This document shows positions 989-35,968 of a DNA stretch of 64,000 nt, piece by piece. This DNA is from Octopus sinensis (taxonomy: Eukaryota), in NCBI RefSeq assembly GCF_006345805.1, contig NC_043008.1, positions 15,004,001 to 15,068,000 of the forward strand, read 5' to 3'. A program made the translations under genes and the position numbers. Numbering within the stretch: the first letter of the stretch is position 1; every line of letters starts with the position of its first letter. A model generated the notes under the pieces. It was not told the origin of the DNA. It searched no databases and worked only from the letters and a program-made list of their open reading frames with translations.

Positions 989-1752
989 AAGGCAGCGAGT
1001 TGGCAGAAACGTTAGCACGCCGAGCGAAATGTTTAGCGATATTTCGTCTGTCTTTACGTTCTGAGTTCAAATTCCGCCGTAGTCAACATGCCTTTCATAC
1101 TTTCGGGGTCGATTAAATAAGTACCAGTTACGCACTGGGGTCGATATAATCGACTTAATCTGTTTGTCTGTCCTTGTTTGTCCTCTCTGTGTTTAGCCAC
1201 TTGTGGGTAGTAAGGAAATAGGTATTTCGTCTGTCTTTACATTCTGAGTTCAAATTTCGCCGTGGTCGACTTTGCATTTCATCCTTTCGGGGTCGATAAA
1301 TTAAGTACCAGTTACGCACTGGTGTTGATGCAATCGACATAATCTGTTTGTCTGTCCTTGTTTGTCCCCTCTATGTTTAGCCCCTTGTGGGTAATAAAGA
1401 AATAAGAAACGTTAGCACGCTGAGCGAAATGTTTAGCGATATTTCGTCTGTCTTTACATTCTGAGTTCAAATTCCGCCGTGGTCGACTTTGGCTTTATCC
1501 TTTCGGGATCAATAAATTAACTGCCAGTTGCATTCTGGAGTCGATCTAATCGACTGGGCCCCTCCCACCAAATTTCGGGCCTTGTACCTATAGTAGAAAA
1601 GAATCGTTTGCACGCCGTGCGAAATGCTTAGAGGTATTTAAATAGTCTGAGTTCAAATTCCAACTTTCCTTTCATCCTTTCGTGGTTAATAAAATAAGTA
1701 TCAGTTAATCACTCCCCTGAAATTGCTGGCCTTGTGCCAAAATTTGAAATCT
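989..1752 (+). mobile_element. Tandem array of four SINE family-1 units (tails B, B, A, A') inside one TSD
   Basis: tRNA-like head (AAGGCAGCGAGTTGGCAGAAACGTTAGC...GAGTTCAAATT). Junctions near 1221, 1405 and 1605. Flanked by the 17-bp direct repeat ATATTACTCAGAACATA (972-988 and 1753-1769). Confidence 0.88.
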
Positions 1753-2089
1753 ATATTACTCAGAACATACAAAACTAAGATTAACAAAAAACCTCAAAAA
1801 ATAAAGCATGGACGTTTACGATAAACTTATGAAAGTGATTTAGACAGACAAAACATTTCTATCTCATCATTTAAAAGGCCAGAATCGACTTGAAGTTACG
1901 ATTGAACGAAGGGTAATTGTCCAGTGTACTGTGATGGAACTCGGCACATCGAGATCGAAAACCAAACTGCGTAGCCACTTAGCTGATGCGACCATATTAT
2001 AGATATCAATGTGATATTTGGAAATGTCTACAAGTTAAAATTCCTGTCTCCTTTACATTAATGATATACAAATAGTTAAGTTAATATTT

Positions 2090-4230
2090 TTCTTTATATA
2101 TATATATATATATATATATATATATAATATATATATATATATTGTTCATTGTTTTGGTTCCATCTTTTGGCTGATCAGAGGAATAACAATGATAATAATA
2201 ATAATAATAATAATAATAATGATAATATTGCTTTTATATTTATATTTGTTTAACGTCTGGCACTTCATAACAACAACAGCATCAACAATAACAACAATAA
2301 CAACTACTGCTGTTGCTACTGCTGCTGCTGCTGCTACTACTACTACTACTACTACTACTACTACTACTACTACTACTACTACTATCACTAGTAGAGAAAG
2401 TGCTGCAGCAAGCAACAACAGATATACTACTAACGAAAAACAATAATAAATAACAAGAACAATAATAATATTTCTAATGTTTTCTTTATTAGTCACAAGG
2501 GCATAGAAGGAAGGAGAAAATGCAAAAACAAAAAAAAACAAAAAAACAAAAACAAAAACAAAAATAAAAACAAAAATAATAACGGCCAAAAAAAAAGGAA
2601 ACAACTGACAAAGTACCTAATGTTGTATTTACATAAATATCCACATATACATTATATATACACGTAGACCGAAACACAAGTATAGGCATATATGTATATA
2701 TTTGTTATCATGTTTGACATATATATATATGTGTGTGTGTGTGTCTGTGTGTGTGTATATATATATATATATATATATATATTATATATATATGTATGCA
2801 TGTATGTATATATATGTATATATATCTCCATACATACACGTTTACTTCCATATTCACTCATATATATGCGTGTCTCGTTAGATATATATATATATATATA
2901 TGTATATATACACGTCGTTACATAAGTGCTTATATATATGTCATTACATAAGTGTTTATATATATATATATATAAATACATACACACATGGGTATATCTG
3001 CCTGTCTGTATATCTATCTATCTATCTATCTATCTATCTATCTATCTATCTATCTATCTATCTATCTATCTATCTATCTATCTATCTATCTATCTATCTA
3101 TCTATCTATCTATCTATCTATCTATCTATCTATCTATCTATCTATCTATCTATCTATCTATGTTATTCCATACTTACACATATATATGTCCATATATAGA
3201 AATGTAGATATATAGGTACGTACGTATGTATGTATCCATACCTAAATATTTACACACACAAACACACACACGCACATATATATATATAAATATATATATA
3301 TACACATATATTATATACATATGTATATATACATATATATGTATATATGTATATATTATATATATATACACATATATTATACCTATATATATATACACAC
3401 ATATATAAGTATATATATAAGTACAAATGTCTACACACATGCTAAAAAATACCCCACCATATAAATATATATATTTATATATACACACATATATACATAC
3501 ATATATATATATATATATCTATACATATATACATACATATATATAATGAATGAAGCTTCCCTGGAACATCATATATAATCGCTTCTTTTCTTGTCACAAG
3601 GGCACAAAAAGCATTAAAACATTACAAAACAATGGCAACTAATACAATACAAATTGATCGGGAAACACAAATTGACAATGGAAGAACAAAACTAAAAACA
3701 ACTGAAAGAAAAACAATACAAAATATCAATGTGCGCATATATATCCTAAGAGACGCAACACATACATACACATATATAAATATATATAATATATATACAT
3801 ATACACTCACATATATATACACACACATATATAATATATAAATATATATATATATATATACATACATATATATATATATGCACATACATATATATATATA
3901 CATATATATATACACATATATATATATATATATATATATATATATATATATATATATATATGCACATACACACACATATATTTACATACATATATATAAT
4001 ATATATATATATATACATACATATATATACTTTCACACACACATATATACATACATATACGTATATAAATATAAATATAAATATATATATATATATATAT
4101 ATATATATACACATATACACATACACATACACACACATATATACACATACATACATATGTATATATATACACATACATAGATACACACAGATACACACAC
4201 ACACATACACAAACACATATATTTGTCTGA
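2090..4230. repeat. Microsatellite mosaic (TA, AAT, TAC, TG, TCTA)
   Basis: Directly visible, including (TCTA)n at about 3010-3160. Confidence 0.95.
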
Positions 4231-5076
4231 GTGTTAAATGTAATTATGTATATGTAGATATATTTCGCTATATTTTGCATATTTATAGGTGTAAATGTCT
4301 ATGCTTAAACAAATAGTCATATCAGCCAACACTAGTCCTATTTTCATTTTTCCTCTTACACAATGTCTGTCTGCCGTGTGTGTATGTTTGTATGTTTGTG
4401 TGTGTGTCTGTGAGTGCATGTATATATATATGATTGAATGTATATATGCATGTATGGGACTAACTGACATACGGATACATATTTTCCCCTAGAGATCGTT
4501 AAATATATCTGCAACAGAGCTGCATATAGAAACACGATCATGAGACCGTTTAAAGTTTAATTTAATTTATTTTTCTCCAAGTCAAGTATTTTCACCACCC
4601 CCACCTTCGAATTTTGCCTCCAGACTCTTCGTTTCCTCCTCACCTTCTTTTTCTGACCCACGTGAAAGCCATACAGTAATTCCTCGACTATCGCGGGTGT
4701 TACGTTCCAAAAGCCCACCGCGATAGGTGAAAATTTAAAACACTGGTACTTACTCCATCCATCTCTTTTGCCGAACCGCTAAGTTGCGGGGACGTAAACA
4801 TACCAACACCGGTTGTAAAGCGGTGATGAGGACAAACATAGACACAAAGACAGATATACATGTACATGCACACACGTATGTATATTATATATTATATATA
4901 TATATATATATATATGATATATATATATATATATATATATATATATATATACATATATATATATATATATATATATATAACAGGAAAGTTTACGAAAATA
5001 AACAAAAGACGAAGGCAGATGGAGTACAAACAAACAAATGTATTAGTATAGCGCTCAGGAATAGAAATAGAAAAAG

Positions 5077-34800: not shown

Positions 34801-35205
34801 ACCTGTCCAAGATGCGGTGGGGACAGGGAAACCGTCCCTCACGCTATTGTTCAGTGTCCGGAGATAACTGAAATGTGGGCTTATGCTGAACATCTGTTGT
34901 CCGGCGAAGGAAGAGTACGGCTGTCGACTGAGTCAATTATAAAAATTGACCCACCGGGAGTTCTAACGAACGAAGGTAAGATTTGTTTTCTCACGGTTGT
35001 AGCAATAGCAAAAGAGGCTGTATGGAATACTAGGATAAAAGGAATTAAGACAGGCAACTTTATCTCTGGTGACAATTTACGATCCTTTTTTTCTTTTCAT
35101 TTGAAAAGGAAACTGTGGCTGGAGAAGAGGTGTCTGTCAGAGTGTACGTTCCAAAAGAGATGGAAGTATGTTGCACGAGTGTTGTGCGTGCAAGGAACCG
35201 TGTGA
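31811..35205 (+). pseudogene. LINE ORF2 (APE endonuclease, reverse transcriptase, CCHC), multiple frameshifts and stops
   Basis: APE motifs: MAIHIGCLNVHGL, DPEGRLVVLD, IRLVAIYAPN, TYLDRIL, SDH. RT motifs: KSPGLDGLPYELY, NFRPITLLN, LDQSKAFDRVDH, RQGCPLSPLLY, FADDI. C-terminal CPRCGGDRETVPHAIVQC. Confidence 0.93.
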
Positions 35206-35457
35206 ATAGACGAGGAAGAAAAAAAAAAAAAAAGGAAAAATAAAAAGGTATCAGCGGTAGATCGGGGCTTGTGGGATCGGAGCGTAACTTGATCATCGCT
35301 TCATTTGTATTGTTTTTGTACTGTGTATTCCATTCGATTTTTATGTATTGTATTTTATTTTTGATGTCACATTTATGTAAAATCATATCGATTCACTGAT
35401 CCCATCAGTTGTACTGTCCATATCTATGTTTGGCCCCCGGTGGGCAATAAAGAAATT

Positions 35458-35968
35458 GGTATTTCGTCTGCCGCTACGTTCTGAGTTCAAATTCCGCGGA
35501 GGTCGACTTTGCCTTTCATCCTTTCGGGGTCGAGAAATGAAGCACCAGTTATACACTGGGGTCGATGTAATCGACTTAATACCTATGTCTATCCTTGTTT
35601 GTCCCCTCTATGTTTAGCCCCTTGTGGGTAATAAAGAAATAGGTATTTCGTCTGCCGCTACGTTCTGTGTTCAAATTCCGCCGAAGTCGACTTTGCCTTT
35701 CATTCTTTCGGGGTCAATTAAATAAGTACCAGTTACGCACTGGGGTCGATATAATCGACTTAATACGTTTGTCTGTCCTTGTTTGTTTCCTTGTTTAGCG
35801 TTAAGTTCTGAGTTCAAACTCCGCCGAGGTCGACTTTGCATTTCATCCTTTCGGGATCGATTAAATAAGTACTGGTTACGCACTGGGGTTGATGTATTCG
35901 ACTGAAACCCTTTGTGTGTCTTTGTTTCTTCCCTCTATGTTTAGCCCCCTATGGGCAGTAAAGAAATA
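35458..35968 (+). mobile_element. 3' remainder of the split SINE plus further tandem units
   Basis: Unit 35458-35641 (184 bp), junction at 35642, a truncated second unit and a third unit ending AAAGAAATA. Confidence 0.88.

Follow-up and report, generated by a model that had tools for sequence, protein, structure and literature searches.

In crocodilians, the target-specific Tx1-Mar LINEs and the SINEU families that depend on them share one insertion site within another repeat, and tandem SINEs sandwiching a target site duplication (TSD) have been explained by sequential insertion (PMC4494074, Kojima 2015). The pair of elements from Octopus sinensis described here resembles this system in that a LINE, apparently of the L1/Tx1 type, and SINEs share a target, tandem copies sandwich the TSD, and the 5' ends acquire head or target sequence: the octopus SINE and LINE are joined to the same base of the SINE head (q48, see below), units start with q48-63, second heads carry a TSD and tandem LINEs are present. 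The crocodilian target, however, is an unrelated DNA transposon (Mariner-N4_AMi), whereas in octopus the SINE group's own head is the target, so that incoming and resident copies are homologous, which would explain the seamless 5' junctions, the regular 184-bp arrays and the approximately 50,000 junctions. Target-specific LINEs of the Tx1 clade also include Tx1L, found in Tx1D of Xenopus, as well as Keno, Mutsu, Kibi and Koshi (PMC4494074), and a SINE head is absent from the targets summarised in the same paper. The octopus LINE is similar to these elements in its predicted APE-type endonuclease and in its strict sequence-specific insertion into a multicopy sequence, its clade being judged from domains. 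We know of no LINE elsewhere that targets a SINE head, and a full-text literature search found no description of this head targeting in octopus; we rate the octopus pair as an extension of the known target-specific LINE/SINE pairs in which the target is the SINE head itself.

The R2 and R1 elements of rDNA are likewise accompanied by non-autonomous elements, the SIDEs (PMC3414825). Like the octopus pair, they combine a strict site, non-autonomous partners at the same site, mostly full-length copies and precise 5' junctions; target-homologous bases on the element RNA help 5' joining in R2/R1 and would do so in octopus. Head-to-tail units that are later multiplied by unequal exchange are known from Alu-type dimers and SINE-derived satellites, and the octopus arrays share both features. 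Dimers and trimers of tRNA-SINEs are cited in PMC4758252. Known SINE dimers are fixed master structures, whereas the octopus junctions appear to be remade at an endonuclease site, with variable unit numbers and mixed subfamilies.

We analysed a stretch of 64,000 nucleotides of the O. sinensis genome (contig NC_043008.1, positions 15,004,001 to 15,068,000; hereafter the window; Table 1), with SINE positions given as q1-q230 of a reference copy (17975-18204, 230 nt) and mapped by blastn. The window contains 22 occurrences of the motif GGTATTTYGTCTG with at most one mismatch, compared with 0.28 expected from shuffles. The tail end q230 is directly followed by q48 at 1221, 14207(-), 18205, 18389, 18573, 21870, 26314(-), 28266 and 35642, and at 21687 q48 comes after an extra GAAACA behind the tail end; after the 3' end of the LINE at 35457, the next base is again q48. 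The ten junctions of tail B with GGTATTTYGTCTG in seven arrays thus lie at the coordinates given by the original prediction and share their base with the LINE 3' junction, and a second head is absent at all ten, as had also been proposed. The solitary copy that it reported at 9625-9860(-) indeed has its own TSD of approximately 11-14 bp (TTTAAAYGAGG). Another junction class, in which the tail is followed by q14 (AGAAACGTTAGC), is present at 1405, 22055, 38492 and 38677 and was absent from that prediction.

Table 1. SINE arrays and LINE-associated features of the window (A and B, SINE tail types)
Feature	Coordinates	Strand	Remarks
Full B unit, B unit from q48 (1221) and tail-A unit from q14 (1405)	989..1610	+	Two B bodies unrelated (2 shared derived variants); GTCTGTCTTTAC common to all three heads
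Solitary full-length tail-B SINE at non-SINE site, own TSD	9625..9860	-	
Mixed array: full B unit joined at 14207 to tail-A remainder from q48	14040..14436	-	First 14 bases after both q48 points identical, TSD-like
Four units, junctions 18205, 18389, 18573; last unit cut at q206	17965..18732	+	Units share a private variant; its 32-mer is found genome-wide in this array only
B, (GAAACA), B, B, tail-A unit from q14; junctions 21687, 21870, 22055	21424..22269	+	One flanking TSD AAATGGTTTATATA (21424-21437, 22256-22269); B bodies unrelated
Head fragment, full B unit and B unit from q48 (26314)	26132..26690	-	16-bp flanking TSD GAATATGTGTTCATAA; units unrelated
Dimer: full B unit and B unit from q48 (28266)	28030..28449	+	Units unrelated (1 shared derived variant)
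SINE head remnant (q8-q63) upstream of LINE	30058..30120	+	blastn map with reference copy
5' TSD copy GGTATTTAGTCTGCCG	30105-30120	+	Last 16 bases of upstream head
Full-length site-specific LINE, ~5.34 kb	30121..35457	+	Predicted ORF1 with zinc knuckle; predicted ORF2 with APE endonuclease, RT and zf-RVT
Resident SINE array into which LINE inserted; 3' TSD copy 35458-35473	35458..35968	+	q48-230 unit, junction 35642, then irregular unit (q48-207 fused at 35799 to q61-230)
Three 185-bp units, 100% identical, with tail/q14 junctions	38295..38861	+	Recent local triplication, other junction class (tail/q14)

In the window copy of the LINE, the reading frames are broken; copies with both frames open exist elsewhere, and the copies differ pairwise by approximately 0.7%, so that the element is very young and still looks active. 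In one copy (L050), the 1134-aa ORF2 product contains predicted Exo_endo_phos (residues 23-230, E=2.3e-10), RVT_1 (514-755, E=3.6e-29) and zf-RVT (974-1026) domains, and the 520-aa ORF1 product contains a zf-CCHC domain. The best solved relative of ORF2 is human L1 ORF2p (E=1.8e-64), and it is from this relative and from the domains that we classify the LINE as of the APE type and probably L1/Tx1-like. In O. vulgaris, 13 'L1-Tx1' families with 421 recent insertions averaging approximately 5.4 kb have been described (PMC13282606). In Argonauta hians, a 58%-identical relative has kept the tail motif, and two 3' ends in that species adjoin AT-rich non-SINE DNA, a sample (n=2) that is anecdotal for the conservation of targeting. 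R2 possesses a C-terminal restriction-like endonuclease, a single ORF and a 5' ribozyme and, like R1, targets a host gene, whereas the octopus LINE is of the APE type and targets a selfish repeat, and an Rfam search of 29950-35700 for a 5' ribozyme found no ribozyme; the N-terminal APE domain together with the two ORFs ruled out an R2-type element.

The LINE is strictly specific for the q47/q48 site of the SINE head. All 30 fetched LINE 3' ends abut SGTATTTCGTCTG (29 in SINE heads and one against another LINE after CGTATT), and the head lies directly upstream of the 5' end in 20 of 20 fetched copies, 19 of which are full length and uniform at the 5' junction. The junction is exact in 25 of the 30 loci; the remaining five are at this site too but have point changes or form a LINE-LINE tandem. 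A similar share, 82 of 100, of the exact LINE ends up to contig C16 shows the exact junction, and LINE-type 3' ends number roughly 1,300. Insertions are flanked by TSDs of 13-16 bp, the first 13 bases of which are identical in nearly all loci; in 19 of 20 loci the two copies begin with the same base, C or G, and L045 has lost a short stretch at its 3' junction. The SINEs flanking different LINE copies carry different private changes, and tandem LINEs at one site are seen at L036 and on C23, there with a spacing of approximately 5.35 kb. The LINE nick site that the original prediction took as the insertion point of the SINE is thereby upheld. Canonical LINE tails were found 238 times at q48 and never at q14 (P=7e-9), ruling out a secondary LINE nick at q13/q14. 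At internal tail/q48 points no LINE was found (0 of 20, P=7e-5), which predicts that arrays grow at their 5' end; contrary to this prediction, there is no 5'-to-3' age gradient in 12 arrays. The 5' TSD copies of the LINE carry bases that are missing from the target, so the LINE RNA may start in the head and would then have head-derived bases at its 5' end.

The SINE-B tail and the LINE 3' end agree in 30 of their last 35 bases, with weaker similarity extending over approximately 70 bases, and the q48 junction goes with this shared tail: 23 of 55 B tails are followed by q48 compared with 0 of 14 A tails (p=0.003). A small predicted hairpin is common to the LINE and SINE 3' ends, but its energy is no better than that of shuffles, and a conserved hairpin was dropped as a recognition signal. 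Genome-wide (2.72 Gb; 32-nt patterns with up to two mismatches, no matches with reversed-pattern controls), there are 50,062 tail/q48 junctions, approximately 52% of all 96,948 tail-B ends, and 4,097 tail/q14 junctions. About 44% of tail-B ends adjoin non-SINE DNA with ordinary TSDs, implying that a less specific mobiliser is also needed; in the window, dispersed copies or arrays with flanking TSDs of 11-16 bp lie at 9625-9860(-), 26132-26690(-) and 21424-22269.

The bulk of the tail/q48 junctions is approximately 10% diverged, and the q48 base of the exact SINE-SINE junctions is strongly biased, with 4,803 G against 91 C (G being 53 times commoner). In contrast, the young LINE copies, with their 0.7% divergence, show a C:G ratio of 61:39 at this base, close to the 64:36 of today's exact heads. 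Present LINE copies therefore did not make the bulk of the junctions, most of which presuppose an older LINE lineage of equal specificity.

The original prediction treated each ~184-bp unit as a separate insertion, and part of this claim stands. Unrelated units, found in six arrays, and tail-B units placed on tail-A remainders, found at 14207 in the window and at L013, L015, L019, L021 and L027, can be joined by insertion only. At L042, a full SINE lies inside an older head, flanked by a 15-bp TSD (GGCATTTCGTCCGTC). Such second heads with the expected TSD are rare compared with seamless junctions (116 exact versus 4,803 exact; the commonest form is GTCTGCCG followed by AAGGCGGCG), which fits closure of the 5' side by homology. 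Private variants of q48-63 also recur along arrays with differing bodies (TTTAG in L045, CGCCTGTC in L044). On the other hand, the units of about half of the multi-unit arrays share private variants, indicating that these arrays also grew by local duplication; in this array sample, which is small and was partly picked via LINE loci, identity is 93% within and 85% between arrays, and derived variants have a Jaccard index of 0.46 within and 0.06 between them. The variant of 17975-18732 being unique in the genome, local duplication or conversion is the better explanation for at least the junctions at 18205, 18389 and 18573, and the C type of the head of this array, with inner units beginning with the G type, misfits the simple TSD picture. 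The original interpretation, target-primed insertion at the LINE nick site with the 5' end resolved by homology, is largely right. The proposed target, the SINE's own head, has to be widened: SINE-B heads are hit, but so are the heads of tail-A copies, and the target is the whole SINE group.

Collectively, these observations make it likely that the LINE and SINE-B share one head target, with recurrent insertion, closure by homology and later local duplication. The L1/Tx1-like LINE would recognise, through its APE endonuclease, the 5' half of the head in a group of SINEs, probably reading mainly the sequence upstream of the nick. The bottom strand would be nicked between q47 and q48 and the top strand approximately 13-16 bases downstream (around q60-63), and the LINE would insert by target-primed reverse transcription. 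With the SINE-B tail matching the LINE 3' end, the LINE machinery would copy SINE-B into q47/q48 of resident heads carrying either tail B or tail A. Since the incoming SINE cDNA shares homology with the target on the upstream side of the nick, its 5' side would usually be closed by annealing in the head, yielding a seamless extra block (q48/64-230, ~184 bp) and leaving head and target intact at the array's 5' end; where homology is poor, the full 5' end would be kept as a second head with a TSD of 13-19 bp. Because the target site is regenerated, repeated insertions, including those of LINEs, would be possible, and once two or more units are present, unequal exchange, slippage or conversion could duplicate and homogenise them locally.

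We consider it unlikely that the junction arose only once or a few times, that the arrays then grew solely by tandem duplication at the DNA level (unequal exchange or slippage) and that the coincidence with the LINE site is secondary. The private variants shared in about half of the multi-unit arrays, one of them confined genome-wide to its own array, the three 100% identical units at 38303-38861 and the almost uniform G at q48 all agree with this explanation, yet duplication cannot join unrelated units, as in six arrays, or B units to tail-A remainders, and it leaves unexplained the second heads with the same TSD, the identity of q48 with the strict nick site of a LINE whose tail the SINE carries, and the A tails lacking the junction. 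A satellite grown by unequal exchange only was rejected on related grounds: units are each other's closest relatives in about half of the arrays, but 50,062 sites have the same phase, and unrelated or mixed units occur in many arrays.

It is quite improbable that read-through transcripts of arrays served as multi-unit masters and were retrotransposed whole, so that the junction was inherited rather than made at each locus. This would account for the single TSD around whole arrays (21424/22256; 26132-26690), for the uniform G at q48 and for a SINE unit without an obvious T-run terminator. A single flanking TSD is, however, equally expected from insertion into a resident copy, unit number and relatedness vary, remainders derive from different tail-A subfamilies, and the LINE TSDs and second heads are left unexplained. 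Moreover, no position-specific diagnostic variants were seen (Jaccard 0.074 versus 0.076; lowest column p=0.09), and this lack of left- or right-specific variants also led us to reject a pre-formed dimer master, the case that the original prediction had named against itself. Finally, it is highly improbable that the reverse transcriptase halts at a set position in the SINE RNA (q48, e.g., a structured or modified base of a tRNA-like head) and switches to another tail-B RNA at its 3' end, forming an array in one event. In favour of this explanation, non-LTR reverse transcriptases are known to jump between templates end to end, one TSD flanks the arrays, and the tail/q14 class, which is not a site of this LINE, may need such a mechanism. 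It was rejected because the LINE loci have a genuine target duplication (q48-60/63) and keep the head upstream, second-head insertions show the same duplication, tail-A units are preceded at q48 by B tails and never by A tails, and Rfam and ARAGORN find no tRNA-like fold in the head.

Under the preferred explanation, recurrent insertion into a shared head target followed by local duplication, a sizeable part of octopus SINE DNA would be stacked at one base of resident heads instead of being randomly dispersed: at least 50,000 junctions at 184 bp each correspond to approximately 9 Mb. According to the literature, SINEs constitute 4-12% of octopus genomes. This would represent one concrete route by which tandem repeats are seeded from SINEs, and octopus SINE annotation and age estimates should treat the arrays as insertion stacks plus local duplications rather than as independent dispersed copies. 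The seemingly active LINE offers a natural and countable example of an APE-type retrotransposon that is sequence-specific and has genomic targets in the tens of thousands, and the seamless and second-head junctions provide a clean comparison for the role of homology in closing the 5' end during retrotransposition. More tentatively, the head might act as a self-renewing landing pad, with the endonuclease reading its 5' half and each SINE or LINE insertion rebuilding head and site; the SINE would keep a working promoter-proximal unit with older units behind it, and the LINE would gain approximately 80,000 harmless harbours and might start its RNA in the head. If so, retrotransposition would, genome-wide, drive the conversion of a dispersed SINE into satellite-like arrays, and the octopus LINE would be, to our knowledge, the first known to target its own parasite. 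The SINE head itself displays A-box-like (TTAGCACGCCGGG) and B-box-like (GAGTTCAAATTCC) motifs; ARAGORN detects no tRNA in it, nor does Rfam at E<=1.

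The LINE of the window is strictly site-specific. Among the 30 loci fetched with it, its 3' end (...AAAGAAATT) is followed in every case by (C/G)GTATTTCGTCTG; in 29 of them this sequence begins at q48 of a SINE that carries private changes (q1-q230 being the positions of the 230-nt reference copy, window:17975-18204, used for the blastn map), and in the remaining one CGTATT separates the LINE from the 5' end of a second one. In the 20 loci fetched whole, 19 of which hold a full-length LINE (the other is truncated at LINE position 4617), a SINE head invariably lies directly upstream, reading ...TAGC(C/G)GTATTTCGTCTG(C/T)CGC before the LINE start ACATGTG. 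The first duplicated base, C or G, is shared by the two copies of the duplication in 19 of these loci (of 20), L045 having a small deletion at the 3' junction, and the first 13 bases of the duplicated segment are identical in nearly all LINE loci. Judged from the sequence, this segment is a true target site duplication (TSD) of 13-16 bp, with the predicted bottom-strand nick at q47|48. Genome-wide pattern counts, taken over the 2.72-Gb assembly (13,516 contigs), gave 238 LINE-tail|q48 junctions (<=2 mismatches). The exact junction is present at 82 of the 100 exact LINE ends listed as far as contig C16, a share equal to the 25 of 30 in the fetched loci, where the other five show the same site with point changes or a LINE-LINE tandem.

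LINEs also stand in tandem at one head site. The copies in L036 (G000:C14:38239455-38245795) are separated only by CGTATT, and G000:C23:6085347-6096090 contains three LINE junctions spaced by 5,367 and 5,345 bp, so that the target site is regenerated by insertion. Because no LINE occupies an internal tail|q48 point (0/20, P=7e-5) and 4-6 bases 3' of the nick are enough as a target (L019, L036), LINE recognition seems to lie upstream of the nick, and growth of the arrays would be predicted beside the head; the age gradient expected from this was not seen along them. At position 14 the 5' TSD copy has T in 11 of 19 loci where the 3' copy has C, which suggests that the 5' end of the LINE RNA may carry bases resembling the head and that annealing would form the 5' junction, as in R2/R1-type elements.

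Two SINE families have the head and body (q1-165) in common and differ in their tails (see the table), of which tail B matches the LINE 3' end in 30 of the last 35 bases, with weaker similarity across ~70 bases. The head contains A-box-like and B-box-like motifs; since neither ARAGORN nor Rfam recognised a tRNA in it, we only infer that it is tRNA-derived. Two linked head haplotypes are found genome-wide, GCGTAGCC-GTATTT (~64% of exact heads) and GCTTAGCG-GTATTT (~36%), and recombinants are rare; in the fetched LINE loci, a C-type head is mostly followed by a single unit and a G-type head by an array. A third SINE type at window 29150-29850 (-) has another tail (...TGTACCAAAATTTGAAAC...) and is tandem with a period of 184-197 bp, the heads of its inner units having an internal deletion that joins q10-27 to ~q60. 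Five head-only units with 65-bp spacing occur at G000:C1:195358943-195359245, each running to q63 and then directly into a new SINE 5' end.

The original prediction held that ten tail-B junctions in seven arrays coincide with the LINE nick site. On the blastn map q230 is directly followed by q48 (GGTATTTCGTCTG) at all of these places, and the LINE junction falls at the same base, the LINE end at 35457 being followed by q48. At one junction six extra bases (GAAACA, window 21681-21686) separate tail and q48 and resemble a partial copy of the tail end (GAAATA) produced by slippage. The window contains 22 occurrences of the junction motif (0.28 expected). Nor are junction positions spread across the head genome-wide: q48 comes after roughly one tail-B end in two. 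In the sequence analysed directly, it follows 23 of 55 B tails and none of 14 A tails (p=0.003), and the tail|q48 junction thus goes with the tail belonging to the site-specific LINE. Non-SINE DNA with ordinary TSDs borders about 44% of B tails, which implies that SINE dispersal needs a less specific mobiliser.

Features of the SINE tails and the LINE, and genome-wide pattern counts (32-nt patterns, <=2 mismatches unless stated exact)
Feature	Position	Sequence	Genome count
SINE tail B, 3' end		GTGGGTAATAAAGAAATA	
SINE tail A, 3' end		...CCTAGAGTAGAAA	
Window LINE TSD, 5' copy	30105-30120		
Window LINE TSD, 3' copy	35458-35473		
L050 ORF2, APE endonuclease	aa 23-230		
L050 ORF2, RT	aa 514-755		
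L050 ORF2, zf-RVT	aa 974-1026		
All tail-B ends			96,948
Tail-B|q48			50,062
Tail-B|q14			4,097
Intact heads spanning q47|48			81,270
Exact tail|GGTATTT (q48 = G)			4,803
Exact tail|CGTATTT (q48 = C)			91
Exact second-head junctions			116

The proposal that these junctions arose by insertion, with the 5' end closed by homology, stands insofar as insertion has made them repeatedly. In mixed arrays, a tail-A SINE remainder that starts at q48 comes after the B units (window 14207(-), L013, L015, L019, L021 and L027), and in six further arrays (L005, L016 and window 1001, 21453, 26132 and 28036) the units share almost no derived variants. In L042, a nearly complete SINE-B, carrying a head of its own and flanked by a 15-bp TSD, splits an older head (GGCATTTCGTCCGTC type) at q47|48, and the LINE subsequently inserted into the new head. 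Such second heads, in which a head is followed by a new SINE 5' end within 20 bases, form 116 exact junctions, and the commonest form, GTCTGCCG|AAGGCGGCG, points to a top-strand nick at q63|64; the seamless outcome is ~40 times commoner (4,803 vs 116, exact junctions). Units of one array can share private variants of q48-63 although their bodies differ, for example TTTAG in L045 and, in L044, CGCCTGTC, which B units and the tail-A remainder have in common, as expected if this segment is the duplicated target.

Insertion does not account for every unit, as local duplication has also contributed. Unit identity averages 93% within an array vs 85% between arrays, and the Jaccard index of derived variants, whose distribution is bimodal, is 0.46 within and 0.06 between arrays. 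The units of L015, L020, L021, L026 and the arrays at window 17975 and 38303 have most of their private variants in common, and a private-variant 32-mer of the 17975 array has two occurrences in the genome, both in that array. Local growth or homogenisation therefore affected about half of the arrays, among them three of the ten junctions. A single pre-formed dimer master is argued against by the absence of first- or second-unit-specific variants (Jaccard 0.074 vs 0.076; lowest column p=0.09).

The q48 base bears on the age of the junctions. Its C:G proportion is 61:39 at LINE junctions and 64:36 in exact intact heads, and at SINE-SINE junctions G is found in 4,803 cases vs C in 91. Given this dominance of G and an exact to <=2-mismatch ratio of 9.6%, corresponding to ~10% divergence, most SINE junctions are probably old: an earlier LINE lineage sharing this specificity would have produced them before the C-type head subfamily arose. 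The recent cohort would consist of the 91 junctions with C at q48, several of them lying in runs with 184-bp spacing. Inner units of the G type follow a C-type head in the 17975 array. Another junction class, tail|q14 (AGAAACGTTAGC), occurs at window 1405, 22055, 38492 and 38677 and forms arrays with a 217-bp period; an A tail precedes q14 once (window 1599). The LINE does not target this position: no canonical LINE tail is found at q14. In the arrays at window 1001 and 21453, the left head and q14-63 of the right unit share private variants, as if produced by a 50-bp duplication.

The reading frames of the window copy (30121-35457) are broken, and other copies are open: L050 and L042 encode an ORF1 of 520 aa with a zinc knuckle and an ORF2 of 1134 and 1169 aa, respectively. 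Based on the ORF2 domains and on human L1 ORF2p as the best solved relative (E=1.8e-64), the LINE is assigned to the L1/Tx1 group. A search with 191 bp of its 3' UTR gave 299 candidates, at least 40 of them 100% identical copies, and pairwise substitution divergence averages 0.7% (20 copies, 1.5 kb), with gaps in 2% of columns. Most of the copies L031-L050 are frameshifted and a few are open (L042, L050). The excess of indels in these copies suggests errors of long-read assembly, not decay. The nearest named protein relative of the window LINE is from Argonauta hians, and the LINE relative in that species (BAAFZT010000001.1:9781835-9795847) is 58% identical and keeps the 3' motif GTGGCTAA(T/G)AAAGAAAT(T/C). 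Two of its 3' ends adjoin AT-rich non-SINE DNA, and these two cases hint at an origin of SINE-head targeting in the Octopus lineage.

Among described systems, SINEU/Tx1-Mar comes closest: SINEs and their target-specific Tx1 LINE insert at one common site of a Mariner transposon, and sequential insertion is the explanation given for tandem SINEs that enclose a TSD between them (Kojima, PMC4494074). In the octopus, by contrast, the elements insert into the SINE group's own head and not into a Mariner transposon; this choice of target is the new feature relative to SINEU/Tx1-Mar, and it gives regular 184-bp arrays, presumably closed by homology, in tens of thousands. Papers on octopus repeats record abundant SINEs together with L1-Tx1 families and make no mention of SINE-head targeting (PMC13282606, PMC12988792, PMC8967140, PMC4758252).

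Sequence-level analysis covered the window, G000:C12:15004001-15068000, which is AT-rich with many microsatellites, and 50 loci selected via the LINE; genome-wide statements rest on pattern counts. Three 185-bp SINE units at window 38295-38861 are 100% identical, with an internal deletion at ~q125-176; either they were triplicated locally very recently or they are an artefact of assembly. Identical SINE fragments at 43991-44150 and 44548-44707 lie 557 bp apart, each with an inverted partner, and window 43827-44961 is a local segmental duplication containing SINEs. Finally, a 375-bp unit at window 16670-17450, largely TATG/ATAC microsatellites, is repeated 2.1 times with 98% identity.
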